A stretch of DNA of 64,000 bases from Blastocystis sp. Blastoise (lineage: Eukaryota; Protista; Bigyra: Opalinata). Position numbers and translations under genes: made by a program. The DNA is taken from positions 992,001-1,056,000 of the forward strand of contig JBBPEB010000002.1 of the NCBI GenBank assembly GCA_039096225.1. Reading direction: 5' to 3'. Under the pieces are notes generated by a model. That model was not told the DNA's origin and did not search any database. It saw nothing but the letters and a program-made list of their open reading frames with translations. The stretch's first letter is position 1, and each line of letters starts with the position of its first letter. Below are positions 12,243 to 54,750 of the stretch, in pieces.

Positions 12243-12286
<44 letters not shown>

Positions 12287-20900: not shown

Positions 20901-22848
20901 AATTGTGAAGCTTTTATAACGATATTCACATTCTTAGCGAATATTGATGAAATAGTTTGCTATATAAAGTATATATATATATAAATAATATTTTTATATT
21001 TGTCTTTTTTTTAATATGTATTTTTATATTTATTTATTGTTGATTCAATAAGAATATATTAATCATTATAATCTATATATAGATATATTTTAGATAAGAT
21101 AATAAAAATAACGAATCCTATTTCTATTACTGTTTTAATATGTACAATTAATTATATAGTACGATGTTATTCATGGAAATTAAAAGAGATACAAAAGAAT
21201 TCAATTCTTTCAATAGAAGGACATACTCATGAAGTTCAATCACTTTCAGATATTCAAATAAAACTCAATGAAATTTATACACTTTTCTTTAATACTCTTG
21301 ATACTATCGATATTTTTATATTTCCAGTATATATATTGTTATTTGAATAGCATTATGTTTCTTTTTTATCTAATCTATTATCTATTGATATATATTGAAT
21401 AGTCAAAAGAATAATTCTATATATATATATATAGCCATTAGTAAGAGTTGTAACAGAATGTTGTCTTCATATATATATAAATACAAAAGGAAATAAAAAA
21501 TGTATATTCATTTATATTAATATTTATATATATATATTTATATAGTTGAAGAAAGAATTAACCAATATATGGAAAAGAGTTTTAATGTATTTAGAGATAA
21601 TATAAAAAGTATATATATATAATTAACTATATTATATCCTATTGTTCATATTATATATATATAGATCCTCCTGAAAATAAGTATATACCTGTGTTTCTTA
21701 TATATATTCTATATATATATAGACCTATATGTATTGCTGAATTTTCAAATGCTCTAATAGACTTCTATATACATGATGATGAAAGAATAAGACAATGGTA
21801 TTTTGAAATGTTCAAAATTTGTGTTGAAACTAGTGTATATATATATATAGCCATATTATTTTAATTATATATTGTTATAGTTTTCTAAAAGAAATGACGT
21901 TTTTGAGAATATTCAAGAAACTCAAGAATTTAAATATATTAATAAAAATGTTAAACAATATTTCGATTTTATACTAGTATATAATATAAATTTAATTCTA
22001 TAAATATAATTAATATAATATATATATAGTCTAATATAACAAATTCTGAAATAGATGAGAATTCTTGTTCTTTACTTTTAGCTTCAATAACTCATTTTAG
22101 TATTGGTAATTTTACTAGAGAAACAACACAAACTAAATTATTCTATTTAGATAAACTTGAAATACTATTCTTTTCTCCATTTGAAAATGTATATATCTAG
22201 TTATAATCATATTCTATTTGTTCATTTTTTTTTATTTAATACTTATTTTCATTATATATATATAGATTCGTATCCAAGCAAAAAGTTGTTTTAACTTTTT
22301 ATATAGTTTTATGTCTAATGAGAATTTAACTACTTTAGTTAAACATTTTTCAGATATATATAATGGAAATAATCTTACTAATGAACAAGTATATATATAT
22401 TTTTAAAGATATATATTCAATCTAATAATCATATTATATAGAAATTAATGAAAACAGAAGTTCTAAAAGAAGGAGCAGTATATATACTATTACTATATAA
22501 ATTGTCTATTATTTTATATATATATATAGATCTATGGATTATGTTCTATTCTTGAAAATGAATATATATGTCGACCCTGTGCTATTGATGCTATTAAAGT
22601 TATACTTAATCATATGCCACTTTCAGAGTATATATATATAAATTATTTTATTTCTCCTAAATATCTATAAATAATAGTATCTATTATTCATTAATCTTTA
22701 TAGACAGTGTCAAAAGATTGTGGATATTTCCTTCCAAGAATTATTAAAACAATCGATTAATTATTATATTCCTCTGAAAACTTATTTTACTGATGAAGAA
22801 TGGGAGATTATATCGTCTTCAAATAATAAACTCAATTATTTCTCTTAA
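14928..22848 (+). CDS. PSME4: Probable proteasome activator PA200/Blm10 (large HEAT-repeat-like protein, many exons)
   Basis: About 8 kb of short helical exons. The C-terminal exons LFFSPFENIRIQAKSCFNFL, KEGA|IYGLCSIL and LKTYFTDEEWEIISSSNNKLNYFS* parallel PA200 as I recall it ([52 protein letters not shown]). The N-terminal VLHLLPEQQQLFIKNES resembles YNKLLPYAERLDAES. The assignment rests on remembered motifs, not a database search. Confidence 0.6.
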
Positions 22849-24801: not shown

Positions 24802-26331
24802 ATGTCAAATAACGTATTTCCATTAATTAAAGATAAATGTATTTTAAAAGTTATTAAATCAACATTTTGATCGTATTTAGATTTGTTTAAATTTCAAGAT
24901 GAGACACAAATATGGGTTTCTAAGGAGTTTATTGAGAAAAATCATCAATTTCCCTTTCATAATATAATTATACATTCTAATAAATATAAAGATGGCAGTT
25001 ATTATATAGATATGCTTCCTTTTCATATAGAAAAAGTGATTCATTTTTTAATGAAGGATAACTTGGATATTTCTTCATTAAACTTTAAAGATAGTTTTGA
25101 TATATATAGAACACTTCTTGAATATTCAGTTATGCTTGATAATCAAATACAAAATGATTTTTTATTTCACTTAAAGGAATTATTTCTAAATTATTTAAAA
25201 GAAAATAATTACAGTGTTTGTGAATATGGAAATGAAGAAGATCAAGCATATATTTCCATGAAATTACTAGATTCAACTTGGAAAATTCTATATATTGATG
25301 GTATTGTTATAATTATGTTTATTATTATTGTTATATAGTTATGAATGTTATTTTATACAAAAACTAAGATGAATTACAAGTTTATTTAAAGAAGATACAT
25401 TTAATTATATATATTCTCTCTATATTGTTGTATGTATATATATTTAATATACATTTAATAAATATTTATTATATATTTAATATATATTTATTCTAATTTT
25501 TTATAATATATTTATTCTAATTTTTTATTATATATTTATATAGTATATGAAAGAAAGAAAATCAATAAATCAGAATATTCACTTTTATTTCAAAGTCTTC
25601 TGAAAAATGACAGAAAATAAAAATAAAAATAAAAATGAAAAATATGATGAAAAACATTATAACTATAAAGAATCTCTTCCATTCTTTTACACCTTCAATT
25701 TTTATAAGGATAAAAATAATTATTTTGTTTCTATTGTGGATCTATATAAAAGTATATAAACTATATTTATAATAATATATAAAAGTCTATATTTACTATT
25801 ATAGGTAATATTATAATTGATTTTAACTATTGTAATTATCGTATCTCTTTTGATGAATATAAATATGAAACTAATTTATCTGTAGAAACTATTGATATTG
25901 GTGAAAGTAATTTATATATATATATTATTTATATTATATATATAGATTATATGACATCAGATTATGAACTATTAACATTATTAAATTGTATTAAAGAAAA
26001 TCGATTACCTAATTTAATACAATTAAAAATATGTATATTTATATATTTATTATTATAGTAATTATTCTATACTCTATATAGGCTTTCAAAGTGAACAATT
26101 TATTCAGCAAGTTATAGACTGTATTATAGATGAAAAAGTACCTAAATTAAAACAATTTACATTCTTTTTCTGTATATAAATATAATTATTTATATCTTTC
26201 TATATTAAATAGTTGATGTTTCGAAATCATTAATAGAATCATACAAACAACAATTAGTGGAATCTTCATTTATTCAAAAGAATCATCTTGATTTTAATTT
26301 TATTGATAATGGAGTTTTTCAGTTTTGTTAA
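24802..26331 (+). pseudogene. Internally deleted paralog of the BTB-like/LRR-like family
   Basis: The N-terminal exon (FKFQDETQIWVSKEFIEKNHQFPFHNII...) closely matches the gene at 13065, and the C-terminal exons (LPNLIQLK, VPKLKQF, SSFIQKNH) match 8484-8800. About 3 kb of the middle is missing, and there is a frameshift or stop near 25600-25620. Confidence 0.65.
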
Positions 26332-27246: not shown

Positions 27247-27300
27247 ATGTCTGAAGTTACTATTGAGATGCAGAATGGTGAAATAACAAGAGTTATCAAT
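27247..27300 (+). CDS. 5' fragment (18 codons, MSEVTIEMQNGEITRVIN) of the host gene interrupted by the transposon
   Basis: ATG at 27247. The last codon AAT (27298-27300) is the left target-site copy and joins in frame to GTA GAA AAT GGA ATG... at 60229. Confidence 0.85.
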
Positions 27301-27316
27301 CACTGGTAGGCATTTT
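27301..27316 (+). repeat. Left terminal inverted repeat of the outer element
   Basis: CACTGGTAGGCATTTT, preceded by the target-site copy AAT. Confidence 0.92.
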
Positions 27317-27415
27317 CACGGATATCAAAAAAACGACAAATTCGAAAAAGTAAGCAAAAAAATTTAAGACTTTTTCAGCCAGTTACACTTATAGATGCAA
27401 TATTATTATAATAAG

Positions 27416-27585
27416 ATAATTGGATAATTTCAAGCTTTTATCCACTACAATTGCATTAATTGTCCAATAGTTTTGATTGAAAAAATCTAGAAATTTCTTG
27501 TTAGTATCTTTATATATTATAATTGGATCATTTAAAAAATTTAACCACTAGAATTGCAATAATTGACCAATAATTTTGCTTGAAA
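27416..27585 (+). repeat. Subterminal degenerate direct repeat (103-bp spacing) containing CACTA
   Basis: CCACTACAATTGCATTAATTGTCCAATAGTTTTGATTGAAA (27442-27482) and CCACTAGAATTGCAATAATTGACCAATAATTTTGCTTGAAA (27545-27585) match at 36/41. Each is preceded by ATAATTGGAT. Confidence 0.75.
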
Positions 27586-27903
27586 CAACAAGATATTTAA
27601 TCATTATAATAGACTTTTAAACATTTTATATTTCGATTATAATAATAGAAATGTATTTATATTGTTTTTTTAATATTTTTTAAAAGTGTAAACAAAGCAA
27701 TTAGTTTAAATATGTATAAAAATAATTAATTAATATTATAACAAAAAAAAAATCAAATATAAAAAGAATAAATATTTGTTTTTATTATTTGTTTTGCAAT
27801 ATTATAATACCAATGACCTATAGAGTATAAATAATAGATAAAAATAATTATATAAATAAATACATAAGAATTAAAGAAAAATATTAATCTATATTTCGAC
27901 AGC

Positions 27904-28700
27904 CACTGTTATTCTGGTTTCATTTTTTTAAAGTATATGATTGGCTAGTTTCAGTTCAGAATTTGTTCAGCCACTAAAAACAGAGTAGTTTTAGAGACTT
28001 AGGTAAAAATCGTGAATTTTGACAAAATTTTGATACTTTTTTTCAGTTGACTTTTTATTAGACTATAAAATTCATGTTTAGCATATGTTATCAAAGAATT
28101 GACAATATTTTCTTGTTTTACAAGGTCACATAATATCCAAAACGTTTTTATTTTGTTTTAAGTCGCAATTACGACAAATAATGGGGTCAATATTTTAAAA
28201 CCTTTTGTTGCCCTGTTTAAAGTTTAGACCTTCTTAGAGTCACAAGTATGCGTAAAAAGGAATAAAAAGACCTCTATGGGTCAAAACCAAAATTCAGCCA
28301 AAAAGTCAAAAATTTATATTTTTTTTACACTGAAAAATTTAACCGAGCCTATTTGTATCATGGGCAGTTAGACCAGAGTTTTGAATTTTTAAAATATCTA
28401 CGGGAATATTTTTCTTGTTCAAAACTGAGTCTATTTATATTTTAATATATATCAGAGGACACAAGTGTTTTAGAAACGTTTTTTCTTTAGATTTTATTAT
28501 CACTAACATTTCCTCATCAAAAAAACTTATCAGAGGTTATAAAAAAACTAGTTTTTCACAGAATCAAAGAAAGTCCTTCTATTTGTTGTATTTTGAAATG
28601 ATTCTGTAATAAACAGGTATTTTAAGTTAGAAACAGTAGTTTTAAAACGTTTAAAAAAACAGATCAGAGAGTCAAAGAAAATGAGTAGTTTGTTTATAAG
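27904..28700 (+). repeat. Subterminal block of the inner element, an inverted homolog of about 59450-60225
   Basis: The core 28161-28470 aligns without gaps to the reverse complement of 59670-59979, with about 23 mismatches in 310 nt by manual count. Confidence 0.95.
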
Positions 28701-28884
28701 TTATGATTAGTGGGATTCAAGAGTATTTAATAATAGTGTAGTATGTGACTTGTCACAGGTTATAATACTATTAAAATATCTAAAAAAAACAAAAAAACAA
28801 TAAAACTGAATTTCTATGTAATTTTTCTTTTTTTGACTAATAAATTTGAATTTAAACGTGAATTCGCATTTATTTTTTATTTGA

Positions 28885-30010
28885 CGTCTGTATTTGGAAT
28901 TAGAGCTTATTAAAAGGTTTATGTATGTTTCTATGATAAGGACATGCTATTTCAGTATTTAATTATAAAATATTTTATATATTTTTTCGTAATTCTTTAA
29001 GATTTTGCATTCTGGATTCCCTCTTTCTACCTGGTAGTCTTTGTATTCTTTTTTAAGATGGTTTGTGATGTACACATGTTGACTTATTTCTTATGAGGTA
29101 TTTTTTTAGATTCATTTTTAATTCATTTAGGTTTTTGGTTACTCTTGTCTACCTTCTTTCAAACAACAACTCAAGCACTGTTGAAGGTATATAAATATAT
29201 TATATATATTTTTATTTTTTTGCATTAGTACTTTTCAATTTTTCTCTTTTCGTATATAAATATTATTTTTATTATTGTTTATTCTTATTCATTTTATGCT
29301 TCTTATTTTATATATTATTTAGAGTATTAATTTTTTTGTCTCAATTTATGAATCCAGTTGATCGTTATATTCTTTTAAAGAAAAATATAGGTTTATATAT
29401 TATTATTATTATTTATAACAATAATTATTATTATCTCTAGCCATTAAATGAATGTATAAAAAATGTATAAGAATCAGTGAATCATAATTATATAAGAAGA
29501 GGTTAGAAGAAGCTATGAAAAAGATTGAAGTGAACATACAACATAATGATTTAAAGAGTAAAGAAAGGGAATTAACTCAACAATTGAATTGTAATTATCC
29601 TACGATTATTTAACTATATAATAGTTATAATGTTCTTTCTATTATTATATCTGATACTGTATATTATTATTCTATTATATATTTACTATATTATATTGAA
29701 TTCTGTATTCTATTTTATGTAATGATTTTGTTTTATTATTCTATATTATCAACTTATAAGTAGCCATTTATTATTGACTCATATTTGTTTTCTTTATAAT
29801 AATAATAAAAGAATAAGAATGACTATATATATATAGGCACCTTTTTATTATTGGTACCTTATGTTTGTGCTATTATGAACATTATTACTGCAAATAATCA
29901 TGAATATGCTAAGAAGCAATGTGTTCTTGAAAGAAAAATTGTAAAAGAATCATTAGTGAATGAAACATTATTTATTTGTATAAAAGTTCATCATCCTCTT
30001 AAATATGTAT
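28885..30010 (+). pseudogene. Element leader exons followed by decayed captured coding fragments (inner cargo slot)
   Basis: 28890-29190 is homologous to the reverse complement of 58985-59250 (GGAATTAGAGC...GTTTATGTATGTTT...CAGTATTTA...CATTCTGGA.TCCCTCTT). Broken exons follow, such as EEAMKKIEVNIQQHNDLKSKERELTQQLN and VPYVCAIMNIITANNHEYAKKQCVLERKIVK. Confidence 0.55.
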
Positions 30011-32795
30011 ATATATATATATATAATTATTATTATTATAGAGAAGAATTTGATTATTTATATTTTTATTTTATTTTATTCTTATTATTATGTTATATAT
30101 ATATATATTTTTTTTATTTATTTATTTATTATTTTATATAAAGATAGAGAACAGATAATTCTTTATAATGTCAAAATTTCTATTTTAGAGATTAAAAAAA
30201 GGTATATAAATATTTATTACCTAATTATTCATATAATAGTTTGTTTGATAATTATTTAATGTTGAAAATTTTAGCATTTATATACTATGAGATATATTTT
30301 ATAGTATTTCTTCTTGTACTTCTTGATTAGAAAATATCATATAAAACTAGAATTACTAATCAGAATATATATTTTTGTATGTTTATGTCACTACATTTTA
30401 TGTAGACTATTTGAAAGCTAAATTAATTTCTTTGAAGCTTCTAATTGTAATATAATTCTTTTCAACGAACTTATTGGATAAATATATATTACATATTAAG
30501 ATTTGAATTAATGTATTACCATGTTCATTGTTATATATATTTTGGTTACTTTTATTCCTGTATTACTACTACCTCTTTTTCCATTAGACAAATCTATATT
30601 TGGAATTAATTTATCTTCTTCTGACATTTTTTTTGTCTCCTATATTCTATTCATATATCTATCTTCATATTCTTATATTCTTTTTAAATAAATAAAAGAA
30701 TTGAATTACTATAAAATTCAATTATACTCTTCCTTTGTTTAGAATTATCAATATATATTTTGAATTTTTTTCTTCATCTACTCATAATCCTTTAATTTTT
30801 ATATACTCATTTAAGTGCTTCTATAAATATATATACTGATTCTATTTAGTAAGAGTAGCCTTTCTACATTGATAACTCAATTCTACCTTCTAAACTATTT
30901 ACTTGTTACTATACATTTATCTTTCTGAAAAAATAAATATTATTTCTAAGAATTTAAAATCAGCATTTATGTCTCTTATTCTTTTTCTATTTATACGTTA
31001 GAAAACACATATTTTCATTTCAGTCTTTATATAAATATTTATTCATAATTAATATTTGATTTACAGAATTAGTCTATTATAATGTAAATATATTTTTGCT
31101 ACTATTTTTATTTTCTTAAATATCTCAATAATATTCAAGATGTCTATCCTAGATTCAAAATATATCCATTTTATTGTTATAATACTTCTTATGCTATTAG
31201 TCTTTCCGTTATTATAATGAATCCTACTGAACATTATCATAAAGATCTACATATACTTATTTATATTTTATATATAATGAAATAGATATTATCGAACTTA
31301 TTAATAATTCTATTATACTAATTTTTATGTAAAAAAAATACTAGGCTCATATTATTCATTTATTAATAGGAGTGCTTTAAAGCTACTTATCTTCCAAATA
31401 TTGAGTTATATAATAATAATATTGCTATTAATGATATTTATTCAAAAATTACTTTTGCTCTATTCCTGTATTTAGAATTAAATGTTATGAACTAAAATTT
31501 CATTATAATACTCTTACTATTCCTATTATATTAATTATGAAATAGAAATGATAATAGCTATAATGCAAATATTATATATATATACTATCTTTATTCCTCC
31601 TGTGACTACTACTCATATTCCTGATACTATTATACTTTTATCAAATTATGTTACATACAAATAATGGCTCAAAACTGAGTATTTTCTTGTTTTAATAGTA
31701 CTACTGATATTCATACTCCTTCTATATTATAGAATGTTACAATTACTCATATTAATGTATACTTATTATGTCTATGTTCATATTTTTTTAATGATATTGG
31801 TCATGATCACTCCAGGATATTATAAACATTTCATATTATTATTATTTTCCATTATTATTACTTTATGTCATTATTATAACCATATAAGTATCCTAGTTTT
31901 TATTCTACTGTTGTGGTGAATCTTGATTACATGAATCTTCATATTTCTATTATCTAACTATTGTTTATCCCCTGAGAGTATTGAATCAACTAATAACGAT
32001 TCACAAAAAAATAATGATATCAAAATTCTATTAATTTTATTAATTATCATATTATTATGTTCATCAATATAATTTCTTCCTTACCTAAACTTTTTATTAT
32101 TTATATTTCCCTTACATCTGAGTCAATGTAACATATATTCGAATTACAAATGTTACTACAAAATGGAGTATTCCATATTATTTAAAAGTTAATATATATA
32201 TAGATTATTAAAAACACATCCTTATATTTTTAATTAATGTAACCTAACAAAATTATACATATTTCTTCTTATTCATGTAATTATACATTTTCTACCAATA
32301 ATACTACTAGTAATAATGATAGTGATCCTCATTTTATTCATATTATTACTACATGTTTCCATTAATTACTATAATTATACTGTTTATAGTTTTCTTAATA
32401 TTCTTACTATCATGTAATTATTTATACTTTAATTTGTACATCACCATATATTGATTTCATTGATTAATGAAATTATCATATAATTTTAATACTATATGTA
32501 AATAATGATTCTATTTTTATAAATTCGAGAAACACTTATATTATATTACATATGTATCACCTAATAATTATATTAATAATTATATTATGTTGTATTAAAA
32601 TGATAAATCTCATGCTATTAATATATTGTTAAGCAACTTAATTCCATTTTACTACAATTTATTCTCATTCGATTACTTTTATTTCCAAATGCTAATTATT
32701 ATCTTCTTAAGTAATTCCTTTTTCTGCTTAAAACTCCTTATAATAAGTCTCTTTTATTATCTTCTTCTATTCTTATTGTTAAATAAGACTTTGAT

Positions 32796-32831
<36 letters not shown>

Positions 32832-34920
32832 CTCTTGTTGATCATGATATTATTAAGTTTTATTGATTACTTTTTTTTCGGAAAGTAGTTAACTTATAAG
32901 AAATATTCTATTTTGAATTTGATAAATGTAAGAATTTTTAATAAGAATTATTTAATTATTTTTAATTGAATATAAAATTGAAAACTAAATATGTTCAAGG
33001 AGAATATAAAGCATTCTTCGGCACAATCATTTATAAAAGAAGACAATTCCTTTATGTTTGAAGTTTTATATAATCTCTTTCATGGAATCATTATTAAAAA
33101 GTTTCTTTGTTTTCTAATTAGTTTTCATATCTTTAAATATCTATATATATATATATTTATAATGATTCTATTAATTACTATATGTGAGGATTATTTCATA
33201 CATTTAACTATGATTATAATTTATTTCTTTTTGAATATATAAATCAAAAATGGCATATGTTCTATTTCTTTCTATTTTTATTCTTAATTTCAAATGAATT
33301 ATATTATAAGAAAACAGTCATTAATCTTATCAATAAAATTAATCATTTTTTTATATATAGAAAATGTTAAACTATATCATTATCTGATTGAAATGAATAG
33401 ATAATAATAATAATAATAATTGTTGTTAAAGATACTGTTTAAAACGATATGATTCTCACACATTGAATATGGAAATTAGAAATTATATTTTGTAATAACA
33501 AATAGTATATAGAAGATATCATTTTCAACTTACTTAATATTTTTCATTTTGAACACATTACTTTATTTTAATTATAATAAAATTGTTTCATAATTCGAAA
33601 TATATATCATATATTATTAGTATTTATCAGAATATATTATGTAATCTCTTCTCGAATTCTATTATATAAAGATCTATTTTTGATACTGTTATCAATTTAG
33701 CGAAGTGAAAATAATTATTTAACCTATCATACTATTTCTTAGTATTATTTATCATAACTGGTATTACTAGGTGCACTTTATTCTGAATATAAATTAATTT
33801 ATTTGAAAGAAAATACTTTGCATTATTGAAACACTTCTTGATTATTTATAACTAATATATTTCTTTTCTTTTATTTGACCTTGAATTTAAATCTCAATCT
33901 TCTATTTATAATTGAATTATCAAGTTTCTAATTATGTAGTTAGTAATCAGAAATGGATATTCTTTCTATTTAGTTCTTCTTCTTTTTAGTGGTTTTATAT
34001 AACATTAATTTTTGTTTTAATTATTTAAATTTCTTTTTAGTATTCAATAAAGAATCAGAATTCTTATGTCATATTATTAAATTGACTAATGATACTTATA
34101 CTTAATACAGATATTTCGTATTATTATTTGGTTTATCATATCATCAGCCATTAATGTTCTACTTCATAGGAAATTTCTTTATTATTTAATACTATTCTGA
34201 TTTATTTTTCTTTTGTAAAGAATAACGTTAATTATTTATGATTAAAATTAATAGAATTTAATTATACTATACTTCCTATTATACTACTGTGACTCTTTAT
34301 TTTTACAGTTATGATTACTTATAAAAACAATTTGATCATTAATTATACATTCTCCATATTTATTATGTTCTGTTATGATCTTATTTATAGATAAAAAAAA
34401 GAAATGTATATCTTTTTCCTATTATTAGTTATATATATTATGCTTTTATTTTAATTCAATTTTTCGTTGAAATCTTATTCGAATCAATATGAATTATTTC
34501 TTTTAAGCCTTAAAGATAAAGATTTTTTGCAAATATCTTTAAATAAAAATATCTATAGTATATATTATTAAAATGAGAAATATCAATGTTTATCTATACA
34601 TAAATCTTCATTGATTCATATTACTATGATTATTGCATGTTATTGAATAGTTTGATATTATTACTATCAAACTAATTAGAATAGTTGAATTAAATAAAAT
34701 GGATACCAATTATCTAATTAAAAATAATATATTATGAAGAATATTGTATTTTAAAGTGTCTTAAAATGTCATTTATATATAACTTTAACTTCATACATAT
34801 TTTAAAATATAATTAAAAGATTATTATGAATATTATCTCCTAATGATAAACCATGATCTTTGTATCAAATCTTTTAGGATGTTATTTATATAAACAATAT
34901 GGAAATATATGAAAGATGAT

Positions 34921-35058
34921 AATATATATAAAAAATAAATAAGATAAATAAAAATATATGTATACCGTTATATCTTAATATACTAAATAATATATATAAA
35001 AAATAAATAAGATAAATAAATATATATGTATACCATTGTATCTTAATATATTAAATAC
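34921..35058. repeat. Tandem duplication of about 68 bp just 3' of the inner transposase
   Basis: Two near-identical copies of AATATATATAAAAAATAAATAAGATAAATAAA.ATATATGTATACC.TT.TATCTTAATATA.TAAAT. Confidence 0.8.
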
Positions 35059-35172
35059 TAATGAAAGAAGATAAGAATTAATAAGAATTAAATGAAATCC
35101 ATCATTTTTAATATAAATTAATAAATAAAATTAAATAAATAAAATAATAATTATATATAGGAAAATGTATTT

Positions 35173-38100
35173 TTAAGACCATAAAGATTTTAAGTATCGT
35201 GTAGTAAAAACAGTATTAGTTTGAATATCGCTTGAATTGTATGCTCTTCTATTTGAATTTTTAGAATGTATATCTTCCTATAATAATTTAATATAGAAAA
35301 ATATATATAATTATTATATACTTGATTATATTCTTCATCCTCATCTTCACCCTTCTTTTTTATATGTATATCTGAAATAATAATATTATCAGGAATAATC
35401 TTATTGATTATTAAGAATGGAGATCCATATTTAGATTCTATTGGAACAGAATCATTTGAATTATTTATTATATAATATAATCTGCTAACTGATGGTTGTG
35501 AAACAGGGTATTCATGTTTTCTTATAAATACTATATCATTTATTTGAATATAATATAATGACTTTATTAGATGAATTGTATTCACATTTGATATATCTGT
35601 TACATTATATGCAATATAGGAGTTATCTATTGACTCTATTCCTTCGTCTTCCTCTGTACTTGTAAACACTAATGATTCATTGATAAGAATTTCGGAATAA
35701 TAAAAAATGGATAATAATTTCAAGTTTTCTTTTAGTTTATTATAAGATGAATTATGATCTAGTAAATCTATATTATTTGTGAGCAAATCCATATTAATAT
35801 CTTTAAATAATAGTTGATTTATGGTAGTATCATTAAGTAAAATCAATTCTTTTATAAGATAATATATTTCTTGTTCATTAAGATCTTTCTCCTCTGACTC
35901 TCTTAAACCCTTTACAGAATGAATAAAGTTATTCTCAGCATATCTAATTGTTTTAAATTGTTTATGGGATTGATATTCATTATCATGAATGATATTAGTT
36001 TCAACATTATTCTCTAAATCAGCTAACATAGGTGAAGAAATATTTCCATTATTTATATTAGAAAAATCATTAATAAAACAAGCTTCTTCTTGTATAAGTT
36101 TTTTTATACTTGATTCATTAAAACATCTTCTTCCAAATGTTATCCGTTTTATTTTGGAGTAAAAACGTTCTGATTCATATGTACAGCCATATGAATATGA
36201 CCCTACTGATTGTATAGAATCTGCTAAATGAAGAAGTAGATGTATTTGTGAATTGATAATCTCTCGAGGCAATAAAACTTCACATAAGAAATTAAAAAGA
36301 TAACATTGTTTTCGTAGTATTTCTATATTGTTATTAAACATAAATAATTTATCATATTCAACTTCTCTAATTATTGTAGCTAAAGGATCGATAAGGAGAA
36401 TAATTGAAGAATCTTCTATATTGAAATCATGAGTAATAAGAGGTAATATAACTGAAAAGAAGAATATTCTTGTATGCGAAGAAACACATGATATTTTCTT
36501 TTTATTCATGATTAATCTAAACTCATATTCATATTTGTTATATAAAGTATTAAGATTGATTATTCTTGTATTCAAAATATTCATGTTTTCTTTAGACAAA
36601 CAATATTTATTAACTACTTCAACTCCTTCAGTATTACTATCTTTTGAAACTAGTGAAGAGTAATGCTCAGAGTTAAAACCAAATAATAAGGATAGAAATA
36701 GAGTTACAATATTATTAAACAGGTGCATTGTATCAATGCTGAAACTAGCTGAAATATCAAATAAGGGAATACTTTCAAATGGGCAACATTTCTTTTTGAC
36801 ACCCATATATGATTCGTTCTCTTCACATAGACTTCTTTGAGTTCTTATAGTATCCATTGTCCTTTGATTATATTGCTTCATTTCAAACGCATCATTATAT
36901 ATATATTCCAGTGGTATTGATTTAATTATTCTTGGTAGAAGACAAGATGTATCTTCTATATAATATGTATATATAGTAACATTTACTATTATATAAAAAT
37001 GTATAAAAATGAAAAAAAAATAGATATAAATATAGAAGAAACTAATACTAGAAATATATATAAAAATGTTTTTAGTATGGATCATGAATATTAATGAAAT
37101 ATGAATATAAATAATTATAATATCAATAATGGTATACTATACTAACTATTTACAATATAGAGGCGATATAAAAAAAAATTATATGAATAGTAATAACTAT
37201 AAGATATTGAACTACATATGATATTAATACAGATACTAAGGATAATAGTAGTACTAATAACAATATCAGTATAAAGAAGAATAAAGAATGATATATATAC
37301 TATTATGGATAATCAATGGAATATTGAAATAATGATAAAAATAATATAATATAAACATAATAATATATGTTTATAAAAAGTATACTAATATAATTAGAAT
37401 ATATATATATATATATATACCTGGATTCTTGATAATTATTGGAAATCTTATTTCATTAATTTGATTATTATCATTACTTTTGTCAATAAGATTAGATACA
37501 CTTCCAAATGAGCATTTAATTCCTTCATGAAAATGTTCGTCTGTTCTTCCTATTTCTAATTCGCAACATCTACATGGGAAAATAGAAGATGGTCCACTGA
37601 AACAACCGATTGCCGTCATAGCGGCATAGTCTCCATATACATTTAATAATATGCCAACAACCTTTCTTTTTTGTATAGTGTTGTTTATCATTATATCCAT
37701 TTCTATCCCCTTTGAAAGTTGTTTAAACTCTTCAACTATTATTGACATTATAGGCCAACTATGATACTCTGAAGTAATTGCATAAGTCCAAAAAGATCTC
37801 TTATCATAATTTCTTTTAATATTATAGTTTAATAGCTTTATTAATAGAGGAAAGGAGGATCTATTATAATCTGAAGAAGAATGCGAAAATACTGATATCC
37901 CATCACAAGTAAAACTAAAGGCTAAGAGAATATCGCCATTTTCTAGTAATCTTTCAATATACTTCTTATATGTAATACTTCTTAAAAAAAGAGGAATATC
38001 ATCTGGAATACTATTTTGATCTGAATTAATTATTGATAATATATCTTCTTTTTTATAAAAAGAAATATCTTGGATCATTGTTTTTGATTTTAGCATTTGT

Positions 38101-38619
38101 CTTATCCTTGGTATTATAGGTACAATTGTTATTCTTCTACCTAAATAAACAATAATGCATATCTTATATATTAAAAATATAATATTATTGTCATACTTGA
38201 TTTCACCTCACAAATACTATTTGAACAAGTCCTTTTTTCTATCTCTATTGATTCTTTACCTTTATTATATCCAAGAATAGTATTACAACAATCTGATACA
38301 TATATGTTAAGAGTAGAAACTTTATTAGGTACTAATCTTATTAATTTTTGTACTACCTGTTGACCATAAAGAGGAATATCAAATTTATTTATTGATGGAT
38401 TTATTATTTCAATTATATCATTTACAAATTTATATATATTCTTAATTTTTTCCATACTAATTCTTAATGAAATCCAAAATTCAAATATAATCTTCTCTAT
38501 CTTCTCATTTACTCCATTAGAACCATGATTCTCATTTGATATCTATATATATGTATCTATATATATGTATCTATATATATATATCTATATATATATATAT
38601 GTATCTATATATATATATC

Positions 38620-38690
<71 letters not shown>

Positions 38691-38920
38691 TATAATAAAA
38701 ATACGTTATCTTTCAAAATCATATTAATGATTTTTGAGATTAAAGGATCATTTCCAGTTATATTAGATCCTTCATTTGAAACTATAGGTTCTATTACATC
38801 ATCGTGTGATATGTCCACTGAATTATCATTGACTTCTATATTTCTTTCTTCATGATGTTTTGTTTCTTTATTTTTTCTTTTATTCGGGAAGCCATTATTT
38901 GAATATAATCGGTGTGTCAT
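35173..38920 (-). CDS. CACTA/EnSpm-type DDE transposase (inner element), spliced
   Basis: Motifs [41 protein letters not shown]...FSG...[16 protein letters not shown] and [11 protein letters not shown]...[13 protein letters not shown] match the TnpD/Transposase_21 architecture. There is an N-terminal Cys cluster. The start [11 protein letters not shown] and spliced end [15 protein letters not shown] are homologous to the second copy. Confidence 0.88.
38536..38690. repeat. (TA)n microsatellite in an intron of the inner transposase
   Basis: An imperfect TA run of about 150 bp; it produces the YIYIYI shadow ORFs. Confidence 0.9.
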
Positions 38921-40315
38921 TCTATATATATCTTGTAAAATACAGATTGGAATAGGTGTATTTATTCTTAATAATATTATTGAAAGTGAATAGAAATAAT
39001 TAATATGATATATGATTTTGTACATAATCAATTTTACAACAGAAAAATTATTTTATTAGATACCTTTGTAATTTCAAATAGCACCTGGAAATACAATAAA
39101 TTCTTCACTTTATGTTGTTATTTCAATATAATATGAAATTACTTCAAGTTTTAAATGAAAACATCAGATTCATGGAAAATGTATATATTCTTGTAAAAAA
39201 ATATGGATAACCATGAATAGAAAAATAATTGAAGATTCTTTCTATTTTGTAAATACTATTTAATATTATGGTTTGCTATTTAAAAATAGAGATCACATCT
39301 ATTTATGTATAATATATTTGAAATATGTTGCAATTGGAGACAAAATTGGAGTGCCCAGTTGAATTCAATTTTATTAAAATTATGTGAATGCCAATCTTAA
39401 TAAAGTCAACTGTATTATTGTCAATTATTACTTTTATTAACATGTTAATTAATACATATTTAGGTATTTCATATAGTTATGCATTTTTGATAGAAATATT
39501 TTAATATTTTGAATGATTTAAATAGAATTACTTTATTGCTTTTAATAGGAAGAATAAGTACAAATGATTATGATTTGTTTATTTACTTAATCGATTATTA
39601 ATAATTGCTAAAGTGAAGATATTATTTCTTTGTTTATCTATATAAACTATATGAGATATTAAAGTACTCTTTTCTATATAAGTAGTTTCTTCTATAAGAA
39701 TAGTCCTGACCTATTTTCTATATAATCGGCACTCTTCTTTTCTTTATATATTCTCCTATCATTTCATTTATTCGAAATACTTTTAGAAATAGATAGAAAC
39801 TTCTAATTAATGGTTTTAGATTATATTAACTAGTCTTATTTATATTTAGCAGATACAATAATTATTCTAAGAGTGTATATATATATACATATATAATGAA
39901 TATATTATATAAATTATTTATTATATATATAGATTAACAATACTTGATGCAAACTTTATATTATATTTTAAATATTCTTTTGTTTTACTAAATTGATCAA
40001 TATATTTACATTATAATCTTCTTAAATATATATATATATAATATAAGATATTCTAGTTCATTCTGGTTTTTGTTTTTAGTTGATTGTTAGCTAAAGAAAA
40101 ACAGATTTCTTAAAAATTGTATCAATCACTAAATTTGATATATAAATACGTTTTCTTAACATAACTAACTGATAACATTTTTATGATTAAAATTATTGTA
40201 TTTGATTTTTTTATTTATATGTAAACACAAAGAAATATTTTTTACTTTTTATAGAATTTACAGAGAATAAATAAAAGAAAACCATAAAATCATATATTTT
40301 TTATTTCATTTAAAA

Positions 40316-41224
40316 ATGCCTAGAAAGTATTATAAATATTATTTTGTTATAATAAATAGAAAAATTGAGGTTGAATTGTTATCTACAGATGAAATCATTA
40401 GAATAAAAAAATTCAAAGTAGAATTTCTGAATCAATTTCGTGAATTCTATTTGTCACTTCTTAATACAACACAAAGTAGTATATATATATATTTTTCATA
40501 ATTAATAATAATTATAGAACAATATAAGAAACTGGACTATGATATGGAAATTTTTTTTCGACGAGAGGCTCTAAAAAAAGGTATTAAAGTAACATCAATT
40601 ATGTCATCAACAAAGGTCGTAAAAGTAATTATAATAATTTATACCATTATGATACACTTTTAATATTATAGTCACGTTTAAGGTTTATTCCATACGTTTT
40701 AAATAATGAAGAATTAATACAAGCAAGAATTATCTTTAAGAAAGAAAATGACTGTTTAGTAGTCGATGAAGAAAGTCAATTGTTCATATTAATTTTTCAA
40801 ATAATTAAAGAATATCTATCAGTATTTAGTGAAACCAGTAAATTAAATGATTATACAATTAAAAGAATAATAAAAAAGGCATTTTATGATAAGAAAAATA
40901 ATGGTAATTTTGTTTCATTTTTTGGATTTTTCATAGAAGATAAAGATCATCAAATAATAGAAGATATATCAAAGATTAAAGAATCATTCATGGTAAATAT
41001 TATATATATATCTATTTTATTATCTATATATATATATATTATTAATATAAATACATATATATTATATGATTCCCCGTGAAATTTACTTATATTTATAGAT
41101 TTCTAATTGGATAAGGAATGACGAAGCCTTTAATAATAAGTCATATAAGTATAAAACCAACCACGTCATAATATCTCAACTGACGAGCTGTTATGACAGA
41201 GTCAAAAATAATATCCGTCACTAA
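40316..41224 (+). CDS. Transposon accessory protein (inner element), spliced, unknown function
   Basis: The exons join to give ...KKFKVEFLNQFREFYLSLL|..YDMEIFFRREALKKGIKV..|RLRFIPYVLNNEELIQARIIFKKE...IIKKAFYDKKNNGNFVSFFGF..|..SCYDRVKNNIRH*. It is collinear with the gene at 42522-43710 and divergent from the transposase. Confidence 0.78.
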
Positions 41225-42338
41225 TTGTAAGTAATATGATTTGACAATAAAGGTTGTATTTAAAGACATACCTTTTTATTTATTCTAGAATATATTTTAT
41301 TTATTCTTATTTTTTTTATATTTATTTTATGTTTATTCAGTATGAATTAATAACGTTATATATCTTTAGTAATTCTTGATCTTATATAGGACGATGACTG
41401 ATGTAGCCGTTCTTGTGTCACATATTTATCTCTGTATGTATGTTTTTAATTCCTTGTTTTTGATTATTTTATTTTATAGTTAAGACTCTATCATGGTTGA
41501 TGTGATTATTATTTTTGCTAAACATTATTATAATTGTAAATATATTTCTTATATTCTTTTTTATAATATAATTAATTACTATCATATATAGGTTATTCGT
41601 TTGTACTATTTTATTAAAAATTATACTTACGCTTGTATATATTTATATATTTGTAATCTAATTTTCTTTTCTTTTATAGTTAATACTTAATTATGATTTA
41701 GACTTAAATATATCTGTTCCAACCAACTATATTGGTAAATATTTGTATGTATATAATTAAAATTAATACTATTTTCACTAATTTATATATTATTTTATAG
41801 GATTGAGAAAGGATTAAATTACAAAATGTATTTTATAATTTAAATATTATTTTTATAATTAATTGCTATTTATTTTATAATTAATTATTATTTATTTATA
41901 GGCATAAAACTGTACTTCATGATCTATATGATTAATTATAAACAAATATCTTCATTAAATATATATTTACGATATTTTTATTATTTAAATTGTTATCATT
42001 ATCTATTCTATTAATATTAAGAGTTTTGTTTTCTATTATATACAGAAGTTATAAATATGTTTAAAAACACTGATAATTATTAAAAAGATAATTACTTTTA
42101 TTGAAACACTAAAATTATTTTCGAATAAATAGAATGCTCTATATAAGAAATTTTGGACATTTTATTGGCTCCCATTATGAATATTCTTAATTTTATTGGA
42201 TTATTATTTTGCTTACTTCAATAGAATGTTAGAAGTTTGCTTTATTTCCCAAGGGGATGACTATGATAATATCTTAAATAATCTGAAAAATAATTAGTTG
42301 GAATTTCTCATGTATCGCTTTTTTCCTCCCGTGAAAAA

Positions 42339-42350
42339 AGACTAATAGTG
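42339..42350 (-). repeat. Terminal inverted repeat of the inner element
   Basis: AGACTAATAGTG followed by AGT. The preceding TCGCTTTTTTCCTCCCGTGAAAA resembles the reverse complement of the outer left end, TCGTTTTTTTGATATCCGTGAAAA. Confidence 0.75.
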
Positions 42351-42521
42351 AGTACAAATTGCAATTTTTGATTTATCTATAAAAATAAAAAATAGAATAT
42401 TATATAAAAATAAAACATACAATTCATTGTTCTTTATTATAATTAATTATATTTGATCTATATAAATATATAATGATAATGTTAATATATATATATATAT
42501 ACTATTATTGACAATGATTTA

Positions 42522-43710
42522 TTAAGCATTCCTATATATAATTAGTAATAGTATATAAAGACAATAATATATAGAAATAATATAAAGATTGGAAACAATA
42601 TAAAATAATATACCAGAAAAAATGGCAACAATAGATAGCAACCAAGGTTTATTACATCCTATATATAAAACATATATATAAATACAATGATAACTATACT
42701 TTATAATGAAGAAAGAGAATAAAAAATGTATTATATCCAAAAAATAAAATATTACCAATAAAACTGGAAGTAAAAAATATTCTAAAAAATAAGAAACAAT
42801 AATATATAATAAACCAATAAAATAAATATACTGATGACGCTGATAGTGTTCTATGACTCTGTCATAGCTGATTTGAAGATTATCAATAATTTTCTTATTA
42901 TTCATAAATGAATGACTGGTAGTAGTAAAAAGAGAAGAATCTCTTTTCCATTCAGAATTCTAAAAGAATTATATATATTGACAGTATAAATAGTTAAAAT
43001 ATATACTAAAGGTTCATCTATAAGACTTGCTTTTTCAGTTATTTTGTATCCATCTTTATCAACAACAACAAAACCAAAAGAACTAGCGAAGTTACCTTTT
43101 TGTCTTTTATCATAGAACGCTTTTTTTATACATCGTATGATGTCATAGTCATTTATTGACTTAACTCTCTTATGGAGAGACATGTAGTCTTTTATGACTA
43201 AAAGAATAAGATTATATAATGAATTATTTTCGTCAACGCACACATGATCTTTCTCTTTTTTTAAAATATATTTTGCTTTTATTAATTCTGAATCTTTTAA
43301 GATATATGGAATTAGTCGTAAACACTTCTATAAAGATTATTTAATTAAAAGAATATAAAATGAGACATTAATTAGAGAACAGGTTATACTTTTATTTGTT
43401 TTGTTGTATCTTTTATGGCTATTACTTTGATATGTCTCAAAAGAGCTTCTTTTCTCAGAAAAGTCTCTATATCGTATGTAAGATATTTACATTCTTTTTT
43501 TCCTAAAATGATTATAAACATCATATAGAATATACCGGATGTGTCAGGAGAGATGAGAGATCTATAAAATTCATGAAAAGATCCCAACATTTCAATTTTG
43601 AATTGTTTTAGTTTTTTCATTTCCTTTTCAGTCAACTTAGACCTATAATTAGGGAGATAAAGATCATAAAAATGAATAAAAAATGCTTTTTGGTCATGTT
43701 TTGTTAACAT
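42522..43710 (-). CDS. Transposon accessory protein (outer element), spliced, unknown function
   Basis: KQFKIEMLGSFHEFYRSLI|..YDIETFLRKEALLRHIKV..|CLRLIPYILKDSELIKAKYILKKE...CIKKAFYDKRQKGNFASSFGF..|..ISYDRVIEHYQRH, with the same intron positions as 40316-41224. Both ends are approximate. Confidence 0.78.
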
Positions 43711-44416
43711 ATTAAAACGAAAGAATTTTTATAAGAATTTCATATTATGGTTTATTATTGTTTTTAAAAGTCTCAAAAAAAAAGTGAAATTATTTATTAT
43801 ATTAAACAATATAAGGTCTCGTCATATTATGTTTTTAAAACAATGTTCTATCTTTTTATGTAGTTAGTTGTTGCATGATCTGTAAAATAATTTATAATTG
43901 CAATTTGTTTGCTAATACTTCATAAATAAACAATAAATATAATGGTTAAATCGTTTATTATCACAATATAAAAAGATATAGAAAAGAAAATTAAACAAAA
44001 TTTGTTTAGAATGATATTTTATTTTTTAAACAATAGCATTCTAAAAGCTGAAATAAATAAAGAATTTTGATATATATTAGATATCACACTTCGAATCAAA
44101 AAGTATATATAGTAGAAATTATTAAATTAAGAAGGACTAAAAATTTATTGAATTAATTATATTTAAAAGCATTTGAAACAAATTTTCTTTTGGTGTATAT
44201 AATATTTTACTTTCATTAGACGTATGTATAATATAATGAGTAATTCGATCATATATTTTTATAATATTGATACAATTAACAATTTGATCTACACTCAACA
44301 AACCTATTATGCTAAATAAAACATAAATAAAATGAAATTTGAGATAATTAATTCAAATTATTAATATAAAAATCTAAATTTTTCTCAACATTATTTTTCT
44401 TTATTCTATTTCTAAA

Positions 44417-47400
44417 ATGGGTACACGACTTTTTGATATTCCTGGTTTTCAACCAAAAAGGAATCGTAATGATTCTACTACTTATATACATATGTATACA
44501 TAGGTATCTCAATTGATGATGAACTTCCTACTATGACAAATGATTATGAGGATACATTACAATATTGTGAAGACTCATTTCAAGGTGATAACACTAGTTC
44601 TCAAGAAGAAGTATCAATAATGGATTCACTTTTAGATAATGTAGTGAATTGCGTATATATATATTATTTAAATATGTTTTATAATGGATATAATCATTAA
44701 TCCTATTTATAATAATGCATATATATTATTGTAGAATAAAATATTCAAAGAAGACGAAAATAAAACATCAACACTTGATGATTTTATATATATTTGTTGG
44801 TGTGAACTTAGGATAAGTAAAGAACACATAAAACAACTTTACGAGTTAGCAAATAATATAATCAAATTAGTAGCACCACAACATGAATTGCTATATATTC
44901 CGAAGAGTGGCCAAGACATAGTTCGAAAGTATTGTTCTTCCAATAATGAGATACCAATTCACAAAAATCTATATATTTGCAGAAACTGTACTAAGTTACT
45001 AGGATTTAATGGAGGAAGAAATCTATTAGAGCAGGAAAAGATACAATGTAGTAATGAAGAATGTGGACCAAATACAGGTATATATATATACATATAGTCA
45101 TTATATATATACTATCTTTATATATGTTTTTTGTATATTAATATTAGTATATAATACCATTATAGTATTCTTATTATAATTTTTTGATATATTGTTCGAT
45201 ATACAATTCAATTATCATTAGATATATCATTATTATATATATTATTTCAATAATTATTATTGTTAGTATATTATAGTAATATTATTTGAAACATTCTTTC
45301 TATTATTCTTAATCTAATATTTCAATATATTGTTTGCTATATAGGATTAACGTATTTCTTTATATTTATATAATATTCCAATTCATTATTTTATTATATT
45401 ATTCAATTTATTATTTTTAATATATTTATCCTTAATCCATATTATTTTTAGTATATATATATTATTATTGAATATATAAATTTGATATACTTCTTCATAT
45501 ATACTATTTTATTAGAATAGAATATAATTCTTATTATAGACAATAATATACACTATTTTTAAATATTAATAATTTGAATATTAGTATATGTAGAGTCTAT
45601 ATCATTCATTCTTATTATATTATATATATCTCAATTTCATTCTCAATATTTCCATTATTATTATTATTGTTTATACATAATATACATTATATTCAATATA
45701 ACTATTCAAATATATAGGAATTAAAACATCAATTATTCCTCTTATACCACGAATTCGTAAATTCCTATCTTCTAAGAAGTTTATAAATGAAATATCATAC
45801 TATTCTAAAGAACAAATAATTCAATATCTTTCTATGCCTGTAGAATCTTTGCCAAGCAAGTTACCAGCCTATATGTCAGGTAAGAATTATCGACAGTATA
45901 TGAGTAAGGTCATAAATAATGGGGATATATTTTTGACATTTGATATGACATGTGATGGAATAAGTGTTTTTACAAATCCATTATCACAGATTAATCAATC
46001 TTCTTTTCCTATTCTTCTCAAGTTATTGAATTATAATTATAATAGAATATCAGATAATCGTTCTTTCTGGGTTTATTCAGTAACAAAGGAATCATATTCT
46101 AATACCATTCTAACTTTATTAATAAAAGAATTTTCTATACTATCATCTGGAATAGAAATGGATATATATATAGATAATAGGATTATAAAGAAAAAAGTGG
46201 TTGGAGTATTACTAAATGTTTTTGGTGATTGTGCAGCAGTTTCTACTATTGGTGGTTTCTCTGGATCTTCATCTTCATTCCCATGCAGATATTGTGAGCT
46301 TAATTGGAATCGAAGTACATCAGAATTCCACCAAGGAATAAAATGTACATATCAAAGTATTGAAAATTATATTACTGTTGATACTAATAATAAAAGTATT
46401 AAGAGAATCTTGTATCCTTCATGTTCTCTAAATTCTTCTCAAGATAATAATGCATATAATACTAATCAACCCAATGACAGTAATAATAGTAGTATCCAAA
46501 TTCTTACAAAATCAATTCCTTCTAGTTATATATATAATGATGCTTTGACTAAAATATCTTATTTACAAAGAACAAATTCTTCTATATTGCTTAATAGATA
46601 CAGTAATGGAGAGAGTGGATCTACTAATGGAATAAAACAAGTTCCTAGTGTTTTTGAATCATTAACCTATTTCGATTCAGCTACAAGTTTTATTCTTGAC
46701 CCTATGCATTTGTTTAATAATGTTTGTACTCTTCTTTTATGTCTTCTGTTTCATTATAATGCAAAAGATAATTACTCAAAGATATCAAAAGAAGGAATAG
46801 ATCCTAGTGAATCATTAATTGAAAAACTATGTTTTGATAAAGAAAATATGTCTATTATTACTACTAGAGTATCTGCAGTAAATACATTATATAATAACCA
46901 TGAATATGAGTTTAGATATATCATGAATGAAAAGAAGTTCTGGAGGATGTCTTCACATTCCAGAATATTCTTTACCTCCTGTATCTTACCTCTTATTACT
47001 GCAGATTTCTATTACACAGATTCTCCTCTTGTTATACTAATAGATCCATTAGCAACAATCATTCGTCAGATATATTGTTTTAAAGGTAATTCTTCTCCTC
47101 AGAATCTGGAGGTATTTAAAAATCAATGTAATATAATATGTTTCCTTTTCGAGTTATTACTCCCAAAGGAGTTGATAAATACTCAGATTCATTATCTGAA
47201 GCATCTTCCAGAGACTATTATTAACGCTGGATCAATTATATATGCTTCCACATACGAATCAGAACGATTTTACTCTTATCTAAAAAGAATAACTTTTGGA
47301 AGAAAGCAATATAATGAATCCTGTATGAGATGCATTATTGAAAGAGAAATAGCAGATATACATATTAATAATAAAAATATTGATAGTAGTAATTCTAATC

Positions 47401-48261
47401 TAAGTTTAGAAGGAAATAAAGAAACATATGATGAAGTTGGGATTGAATTAAATGAGGATGAATCATTTCAGAATGAGTTAACTGAATGTTTCAAAGAAGT
47501 TCATACAAACAATGAACGTATTAAACTCATAAAAGGTATTAGAGGAATTGATTCTATTGATTTATCTCAATCAGATATAAAAGAAATAATAAAGCTTCTT
47601 CTGTTATCAAATGACAATCATATTAAAGAAGTATTATGGAAAGATATAAATTCTAGTAAAATAGCAAATATAAATAGTAGTATTAATGATCCTGATATAT
47701 ATCGAGTATTAGTTAATAATCTAAAAAATGTAGTAATAGCATTCTATTCTGAGATAATGATAAATGATTCTATAATATTTAATTCTTCTGATATAGATGA
47801 AGGAATAGAAACAATTGATAATTCTTATATAATGTATTTAACAAATGATAATGAGAAGAAAGATATAGTACACCTAATTAAGGCATTATATTATATCCAA
47901 ATAGGATCATCTATTCTGATAAAGAAACATGAATATCCTGAGTGTCATATTTCTTCAACAGGTTTGTATTATATTGTAGAAGATTCAAATAGAATTATAC
48001 CAAAGGACAATGAGTATTCATCTTTTATACCAGTAACATGTATTGAACCAGATAATCTTATTATTGTAGACGTTCATGATGATATTCATAAGAATATTGA
48101 TGATTCATATGAAGAAAAACAAGTATATTCATTTAATCTGTTTTTGTATCAGTTTATAATTATATATATAGGCCAAGAAGGTAAAACAGAAGAATAAAAA
48201 TGTAGTTAGTTCTGAAATCGTTGTTACAAATACAGTGTTTATGACACGCCATATTACCTAG
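44417..48261 (+). CDS. CACTA/EnSpm-type DDE transposase (outer element), spliced, apparently intact
   Basis: Start MGTRLFDIPGF; Zn-finger-like ICRNC...QCSNEEC. The 787-aa ORF contains [16 protein letters not shown]...FPCRYC, LDPMHLFNN and IHYLKHLPETI...[13 protein letters not shown]. The spliced end is TNTVFMTRHIT* at 48261. Confidence 0.9.
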
Positions 48262-49079
48262 ATATATCAATTTTATAAATAAATATAATCTTCTATATAT
48301 GAATATTATTAATTTTGTTTTTAATTTTATATTATATTGTGTTTGAATAATATATATTATTTTGATATTAATAAGTATATAAACATTAACGTTTTGTTAA
48401 AAGATATTTAATACAAAACTTAAAGTATGTAGATAACATCTTTTATTATATTAGATGATTGTATCATAGATCTATTTCTATTAATTACTTCATTTTAAAC
48501 ATAATATAAACATTAAGAAATATTTCTTAATTTATAAGAAATCTAAATAATATGAAGTATTCCATTACCAGAAAAAAATAAGATATCCGACAAAGATATA
48601 CAAAATATGAAATGTATATAGAATGTGTTCCGGAAGTAGAAAGAAAGGAAAAAGTTAGTAGAGTATATTTAATGACATATAAAGCTAGTAATACATTTGA
48701 GAATAATAATTTAAAATTAGGTATATTGAATAAAATAGTTATCATAATAAAGCTATATTGAGTACTAAATATATGCTAGTAAAGTTAAATTAAAGATAGA
48801 TATGTATCAATATTTTCTGTTTAAGGATATACCGAAATGTTTACTACAGGATAATAATCTATATTATAATCATGAAGATAAGAAGAATGATAACGAAGAG
48901 GATATTATGTGTCATCAATAAAATAATCATAAATAGCGGTTTTCTTGGAAATGATTTCACATTGAGAATGATATATTTAAAGATCTCTCAATGGTTCTCA
49001 TTATAATTTCGTTTATCATATGTATATTGACGATTATTATGATATTATTCAATATATCGTGTATTATTAGATTTATATT

Positions 49080-54716: not shown

Positions 54717-54750
<34 letters not shown>

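Follow-up and report, generated by a model that had tools for sequence, protein, structure and literature searches.

An inverted CACTA/CMC-type transposon nested within a distinct relative in the genome of Blastocystis sp. 'Blastoise'

The DNA analysed here (the window, 64,000 nucleotides) belongs to Blastocystis sp. 'Blastoise' (assembly GCA_039096225.1, contig JBBPEB010000002.1, positions 992,001 to 1,056,000) and carries two related transposable elements, one of which lies inside the other in inverted orientation. Window positions 25173-48920 are identical to a 23.7-kb locus of this contig, and a transposase open reading frame (ORF) at 45834-48197 has 100% identity to an NCBI protein of the same organism. 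The G+C content is about 20% across the whole window. Genomes of tortoise Blastocystis isolates are large, with 21-23% G+C (PMC10690189), and the genome paper for this isolate gives repeats as bulk percentages only (PMC10690189). A search of the Blastocystis literature found no paper describing this CACTA-type family. For comparison, five loci centred on paralogous transposases (L003 to L007) and the locus of a second copy of the inner element (L002) were used; L002 is located on contig JBBPEB010000004.1 and L007 on contig JBBPEB010000014.1. The copy census covers annotated proteins and these fetched loci rather than whole-genome DNA, and the exons of host, accessory and cargo genes were searched one by one rather than as spliced products.

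The outer element spans 27301-60225 and is now 32,925 bp long, or 18,475 bp without its insert, with the short end at 27301, the long end at 60225 and the transposase gene on the plus strand. It cuts a host reading frame on the same strand, which runs over 27247-27300 (MSEVTIEMQNGEITRVIN) and resumes in phase at 60229-60462 (VENGMREVIIPYS...). The target site duplication (TSD) is perfect, with AAT at 27298-27300 and at 60226-60228, and the host frame stays in phase across the site. The two ends, CACTGGTAGGCATTTT at 27301 and CACTGGTAGGCACTTT at 60225 (minus strand), are identical in their 12 terminal bases and in 15 of 16 overall, the terminal repeat shared on both sides being CACTGGTAGGCA. 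A reading of the element as an intron was rejected, since the use of GT/AG inside the terminal repeat would leave 10 extra bases and a shifted frame. The short arm before the insert (27301-27903, plus strand) starts with the terminal repeat CACTGGTAGGCATTTT and is identical to L007 and collinear with L003. Beyond the insert follow an accessory gene of about three reading-frame pieces (42522-43728, minus strand, annotated product 104 amino acids (aa)), the divergently oriented transposase gene (44417-48261, plus strand, 1011 aa as P0001), a convergent large gene or cargo region (49935-58509, minus strand) with ORFs of 1463, 541, 257 and 320 aa, and a long-end module (59117-60225, minus strand) that includes a 330-nt core (59680-60022) and the terminal repeat CACTGGTAGGCACTTT.

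The inner element (27904-42350, 14,447 bp) is inverted relative to the outer one, with its long end at 27904, its short end at 42350 and its transposase gene on the minus strand, whereas that of the outer element is on the plus strand. These boundaries are based on an empty site in L007, the copy in L002 and the family homology, which starts at CACTG. A conserved long-end module (27904-29025) includes the inner copy of the approximately 330-nt non-coding core (28118-28460). The transposase gene (35173-38920, minus strand) has at least five exons and encodes 972 aa (P0006), a protein that is identical in both inner copies. The accessory gene (40271-41076, plus strand) is divergent from it, and the equivalent of its first exon is broken into two reading-frame pieces. 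The convergent region of this element comprises 6 kb without a long ORF. The terminal repeats, CACTGTTATTCT at the long end (27904-27915, plus strand) and CACTATTAGTCT at the short end (42339-42350, minus strand), each occur once in the window and match at 10 of 12 positions, and the flanking triplets read AGC (27901-27903) and AGT (42351-42353).

The original prediction, which was made from the sequence alone, had reported these repeats and flanks as they are found here. It had also aligned a CACTG at 27904, with 30 nt between it and GATTGGCTA, with the outer right end. This motif has only two occurrences in the window, at 27904 (plus) and 60225 (minus), where 0.08 are expected from shuffles, and the alignment of the two long ends is gap-free over the first 96 or so columns. 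In an inverted self-comparison, the long ends match over 1.1 kb at 76% identity (27894-29025 against 60235-59117), and the transposase regions of both elements align at 65-74%. A 10-nt likeness outside both CACTG long ends was dismissed as chance, since the flanks in L003 and L005 are without it. The proposed resemblance of the 42350 end to the outer left end also stands, as homology links the inner short end with the outer 27301 end and with the short end of L003, the likeness beginning at CACT and the flanks being unrelated. The mirrored gene order noted at the time is seen in both elements and in their relatives, which share a common plan consisting of the short end, a small divergent accessory gene, a multi-exon transposase gene, a variable region with a convergent large gene, and the conserved long-end module.

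The nesting becomes evident from L007, which encodes P0001, the annotated 1011-aa outer transposase, and represents a second outer copy on another contig. Window 27300-27902 corresponds to L007 4616-5218 and window 42351-44033 to L007 5217-6899, both at 100% identity, while window 44033-58260 aligns to L007 9617-23846 with zero mismatches and two single-base indels. In L007, window position 27902 meets 42351 via one AGT, with no insert and no footprint. The join reads TTTCGAC-AGT-ACAAATTGC in L007 and TTTCGAC-AGC-(27904...42350)-AGT-ACAAATTGC in the window. The two loci form an empty and filled site pair, from which the insertion is seen to comprise precisely 27904-42350 and to have duplicated its target AGT. 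Since the empty site reads AGT, the imperfect inner TSD (AGC/AGT) is a single T-to-C change next to the long-end terminus. The left flank of L007 (...GATGAATT, then CACTGG) is unrelated to that of the window, and therefore the two outer copies occupy different loci. This flank has an 87% paralogue in the window itself (11822-15131), whose corresponding site lies unbroken within an open frame. The short arm of L003 is likewise collinear with 27301-27866 and then 42375-44367, the two high-scoring segment pairs reaching 105 and 405 bits and all others at most 85. The motif AATTGCAWT has five plus-strand sites in the 64 kb, and those at 27449, 27552, 42357 and 43896 straddle the insert. The original prediction had regarded the inner element as a relative nested in inverted orientation in the outer one and had suggested searching for an outer copy without the insert as well as for a free inner copy. 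The L007 join, the free copy in L002 and the L003 collinearity show that the nesting was read correctly. As a separate observation, L007 carries a 2.7-kb repeat at 6900-9616 (window equivalent 44033), an insertion that precedes the start of the transposase by 384 bp. The repeat has a G+C-rich start (CTAGGGTCACGCCGCAGGTCCGGGG) and an internal tandem structure, with relatives at L004 19464-22157 and at L005 9254-10175, the latter adjoining a transposase.

The outer pair shows 0 mismatches over 603, 1683 and 14,230 bp (about 16.5 kb in total). The indels at window 45296 and 58154, one in a transposase intron and one in a T run, might both stem from errors in long-read assembly; that at 58154 falls inside the 1463-aa ORF and alters its gene modelling. 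For the inner element, the exact 972-aa transposase is recorded on two contigs only, namely that of the window and that of L002. Compared with window 29641-42350, L002 is 99.8-99.9% identical, the differences amounting to 8 substitutions and 4 indels over 12,724 bp. Its homology breaks off precisely at 42350, next to a TTA flank. The left end of this copy is about 1.7 kb beyond the 10-kb fetched flank, displaced by two repeat insertions of about 4 kb, and the only gene in that region is a 2477-aa model. The left boundary of the inner element is fixed by the L007 empty site and supported by the long-end homology of L003 and L005, which begins exactly at CACTG with unrelated flanks. The two insertions in L002 (3565-7611 and 13902-18357, corresponding to window 41309/41310 and about 35020) are non-coding repeats of about 4-4.5 kb, are 90% alike and start with CAAGCGTTTCACGACTGGCTACGCC. 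Both were inserted after the split from the inner copy of the window, and a fragment of this repeat is found at L004 7529-8164.

Assigning these elements to a superfamily required remote homology. The inner and outer transposases are 46% identical, and the genome contains at least 20 transposase paralogues. The only Pfam family to appear was DUF4218, with sub-threshold scores of 19-22 bits against a cut-off of 27 but at the same relative position in six of six paralogues, and no PF02992 match was obtained with Pfam on the transposases themselves. Since word searches with the transposase, both as a single sequence and as a profile, matched nothing outside this genome, an exhaustive profile search was run. 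Beyond the Blastocystis paralogues, it reaches proteins with Transposase_21 (TNP2) and DUF4218 above threshold. An hhalign comparison with nine of those proteins, all nine carrying PF02992, gave a probability of 99.7% and an E-value of 5.6e-27 over 456 columns, with the motifs IPLIPR, (T/S)xDG, GDxxA, PCRxC, DxMHLFxN, IHxxxHL and ER aligned. Termini of the form 5'-CACT(A/G) are present in the inner and outer elements, L003, L005 and L007. The TSDs are 3 bp long, with AAT/AAT for the outer element, TTG/TTG for L003 and AGC/AGT on an AGT target for the inner element, and those of the CACTA/CMC superfamily measure 2-3 bp. A DDE transposase of the TNP2/Transposase_21 type is thus present by remote homology only. 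Because of the TNP2 homology, the CACT termini and the 3-bp duplications, the elements are classified as CACTA/CMC-type cut-and-paste DNA transposons, and the inner element looks autonomous. By analogy with known CACTA/TNP2 DDE transposases, the transposase would bind the CACT-ended terminal and subterminal sequences, excise the element and integrate it at a 3-bp staggered cut. Cut-and-paste movement is inferred from the outer pair without substitutions, the 99.9% inner pair and the clean empty site, and the family appears to be still active.

The reading preferred here, with an estimated probability of about 0.88, is that an inner CACTA/CMC element entered a distinct relative in inverted orientation, landing in the non-coding sequence of its short arm 603 bp from the terminus and duplicating AGT. 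The outer element had itself entered the host reading frame, duplicating AAT, and most likely it was already present at two loci through duplication when the inner element jumped into one of the outer copies. The original prediction differed in the order of events. It had considered the inner ends more decayed than the outer ones and had concluded that nesting came first, after which the composite moved again. This premise fails: L002 has the very same short end, and the 12-mer of the long end is found again in L005, so that the imperfect inner repeat is a native family trait and not a sign of decay. Similarly, L003 repeats the T/C difference by which the two outer ends are distinguished, and terminal mismatches are therefore native to the family. 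A jump of the 33-kb composite to this locus, with the relative as cargo, could still be argued from the perfect outer ends and TSD next to the single mismatch of the inner TSD, from the intact transposase gene and very recent duplication of the outer element, and from the insert-free sister, which taken alone is compatible with one more jump. However, the only other outer copy is insert-free, with a clean, never-occupied AGT and no substitutions, and nesting is therefore placed after the outer pair had arisen. Moving the composite would then be an additional event within a span that left no substitution in 16.5 kb. Between the inner copies, only 8 substitutions are found in 12.7 kb. Moreover, the inner transposase is present on two contigs only, and neither a second composite copy nor an excised donor site was seen among recorded proteins and fetched loci. 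This order of events is not supported and is regarded as improbable. The few differences from L002 (8 substitutions and 4 indels over 12,724 bp) and the identical transposases mark the inner element as young. Its pair rate predicts about 10 substitutions in the 16.5 kb of the outer pair and none are seen (Poisson P of about 3e-5), so that the outer pair should be younger than the split of the two inner lineages. A cut-and-paste inner lineage with a further recent move would fit this result.

The remaining explanations are weaker still. L007 may be supposed to have once held the inner element and to have lost it by excision, in which case the nesting could predate the outer duplication; cut-and-paste elements do excise, and the outer copies show no substitutions between them. 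However, CACTA excision usually leaves the duplication and small changes, while the site in L007 has a single AGT without a footprint, and the extra event this explanation needs makes it even less probable than a composite jump. The arrangement could also be seen without any nesting, as two relatives lying tail to tail (27904-42350 and about 42354-60225), with 27301-27903 being an unrelated fragment or solo end. The transposase genes as convergent or divergent neighbours would allow this, and 42350/42354 can be read as a shared boundary. However, position 42354 lacks a CACT terminus, L003 keeps its short arm collinear over the junction, the ends at 27301 and 60225 share 15 of 16 bases along with the AAT duplication, and L007, which joins 27301-27902 to 42351 onward at 100% identity, already refutes it. 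An assembly artefact, in which mis-joining of long reads put one repeat within another, deserves equally little credence. The genome is repeat-rich with 20% G+C and near-identical copies, conditions under which assemblers are prone to error, and the outer copies differ from each other only by two single-base indels, of which one falls in a T run. Nevertheless, both junctions are located exactly at termini, with a 3-bp duplication of a triplet that is single in the empty site, which a mis-join would not produce, and the flanks are unique for all copies.

Several limitations weigh against the preferred reading of an inner element inserted into one of two outer copies. Parsimony is the basis for the order of events, and the inner TSD is imperfect (AGC/AGT). 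The left end of L002 is outside the fetched locus, and the right end of L007 is just past it, where TGCCTACCAGTG followed by ATT is expected. The junctions rest on assembled sequence and not on read-level support. The transposases are below every Pfam threshold, so the family assignment depends on remote homology, and the activity is deduced from near-identical copies rather than from an observed transposition.

Apart from the nested pair, the relatives reveal how the family is built. L003 is a complete 14.1-kb relative (6849-20993) with the 12-base terminal repeat of the outer element and a TTG/TTG duplication. Removing the element and one TTG brings its host ORF, which encodes a He_PIG protein, back in phase; this interrupted He_PIG-domain gene is annotated as two genes. 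The accessory gene shows 26-59% aa identity among the inner and outer elements, L003, L004 and L006, and the inner gene shows 42-53% aa identity to the outer accessory ORFs. It has no Pfam match, and an exon-level AlphaFold model based on five sequences (predicted local distance difference test 68.6, predicted template modelling score 0.61) has no fold match in the PDB, the best E-value being 2.

The variable region of the outer element includes additional genes. Its 541-aa ORF contains a bromodomain and PHD fingers. The cargo region is present in both outer copies and is annotated in L007 as one 2378-aa gene; since it was copied to L007 with the element, it is truly internal to the mobile unit. 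The region between transposase and long end at 48.2-56.8 kb (about 8.6 kb) has no counterpart in the relatives. The first 500 or so aa of the 1463-aa ORF are 85% identical to a 513-aa gene of L003 and, over 198 residues, 98% identical to a 3119-aa gene of L005. The cargo region may thus be part family gene and part acquisition. A word search with the bromodomain-PHD ORF returned one distant 325-aa protein and no paralogue, in a length window of 298-947 aa that would miss the 2378-aa product. The convergent region varies among family members, with a UCH-type ubiquitin hydrolase and a 1191-aa gene in L006 (13760-21242) and nothing but the 513-aa gene in L003. At L005 8621-9160 (minus strand), the long end of an inner-type element with 89% identity to 27904-28442 lies directly against a third family member, near the contig end. 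The transposase of this third member (10001-13051) is without its N-terminal exons, and the locus may be another example of nesting within the family. In L004, a Helitron-like gene with Helitron_like_N and PIF1 domains (1-5776, 1862 aa) adjoins another CACTA-type member.

An unexpected finding is the long-end core. It is about 330 nt long, lies about 215 nt inside the long end and is found at window 28118-28460 and 59680-60022, L003 20448-20790, L005 8610-8960 and L006 23120-23462. The core is 85-99% identical among these five elements, while their transposases are only 35-56% identical. The core does not code for protein and cannot be shown to be a structured RNA, as it has stops in all six frames in five of five copies, almost no covariation and no fold signal. 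In the consensus fold, 4 of 92 pairs are changed on both sides and the covariation term is positive, and single-sequence folds are no better than shuffles (z = -0.67 and -0.52 for the two strands). The conserved long-end module has no Rfam match at E ≤ 1. The similarity extends further between the outer element and L003, in which the long-end arms (56847-60225 and 17610-20993) are 94% identical over 3.4 kb, including the start of the large convergent ORF. Since the transposases of these two are only 56% identical, with short ends at about 60-75%, the arms are mosaic, which suggests recombination or conversion between elements. A tentative and rather unlikely explanation is that the long-end arm is a functional module kept or exchanged independently of the transposase, which might act as a cis-acting platform or as a template for a regulatory RNA serving several diverged transposases. 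In that case, the module would be upheld by selection or by frequent recombination between elements.

Regarding the insertion sites, all three outer-type insertions with readable flanks (the window, L003 at 6848/20994 and L007 at 4616, the last with its paralogous site at window 15131) are inside open reading frames, and the frame is kept across the site wherever both flanks are visible. The exons of the host gene of the window (60229-62258) have no Pfam match. Downstream, at 63322-63337 (minus strand), the sequence CACTATTAGGCACTTT is two mismatches off the outer terminal repeat and has no obvious arm homology behind it; it may be a solo or degraded end. Upstream of the elements, the window contains paralogous segments, pairing 12673-13037 with 24830-25197, 8521-8964 with 25872-26296, 11822-15131 with L007 1352-4616, and 742-2242 with L006 3827-5341. 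They are inverted or dispersed, have 66-87% identity and are apparently host gene families, one of which is the family hit by the sister outer copy.

Nesting of transposable elements is textbook behaviour, and no concept is changed by the present case. The family is new for Blastocystis, however, and its ends, TSD, transposase, accessory gene and cargo are now defined. No eukaryote is more common in the human gut than Blastocystis, and its mobile DNA is little known. Some of the insertions are in reading frames. Through this family, genome plasticity can be approached in the large, AT-rich tortoise lineage, and a candidate native transposase with its ends becomes available for genetic tools in a tool-poor organism.

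Compared with the En/Spm (CACTA) elements and the CMC superfamily, the Blastocystis elements share the CACT(G/A) termini, the 3-bp TSD and a large multi-exon DDE transposase with TNP2/Transposase_21 and DUF4218 homology. They also share two long unequal subterminal arms and sizes that reach tens of kb. They differ in that the transposases are too divergent for Pfam thresholds, and the host is a stramenopile gut protist. Moreover, the second gene is small and divergently transcribed, and no likeness to TnpA, or to a known family or fold, could be detected in it, so that the TnpA-like protein of En/Spm, which originates from the same transcription unit and binds subterminal repeats, has no equivalent among the genes found here. 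A k-mer scan of the arms revealed no short subterminal repeat arrays and only three or four AATTGCAWT sites, and, unlike in En/Spm, one arm carries the almost invariant, unique core of 330 nt. Large plant CACTA elements carry captured host gene fragments. In a similar way, the outer element has about 8.6 kb that is absent from its relatives, including the bromodomain-PHD frame, and that was copied to a second locus. In contrast to the plant elements, no host paralogue of the cargo was found, and the N-terminal part of the large ORF is common to L003 and L005 and may be a family gene and not cargo. The intergenic DNA of maize consists of layers of nested elements, and the arrangement described here resembles it in that a younger element with its own TSD is located in an older one and an empty-site copy is available. 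Unlike in maize, both layers belong to one family and, since they are essentially undiverged from their sister copies, both are apparently mobile now.

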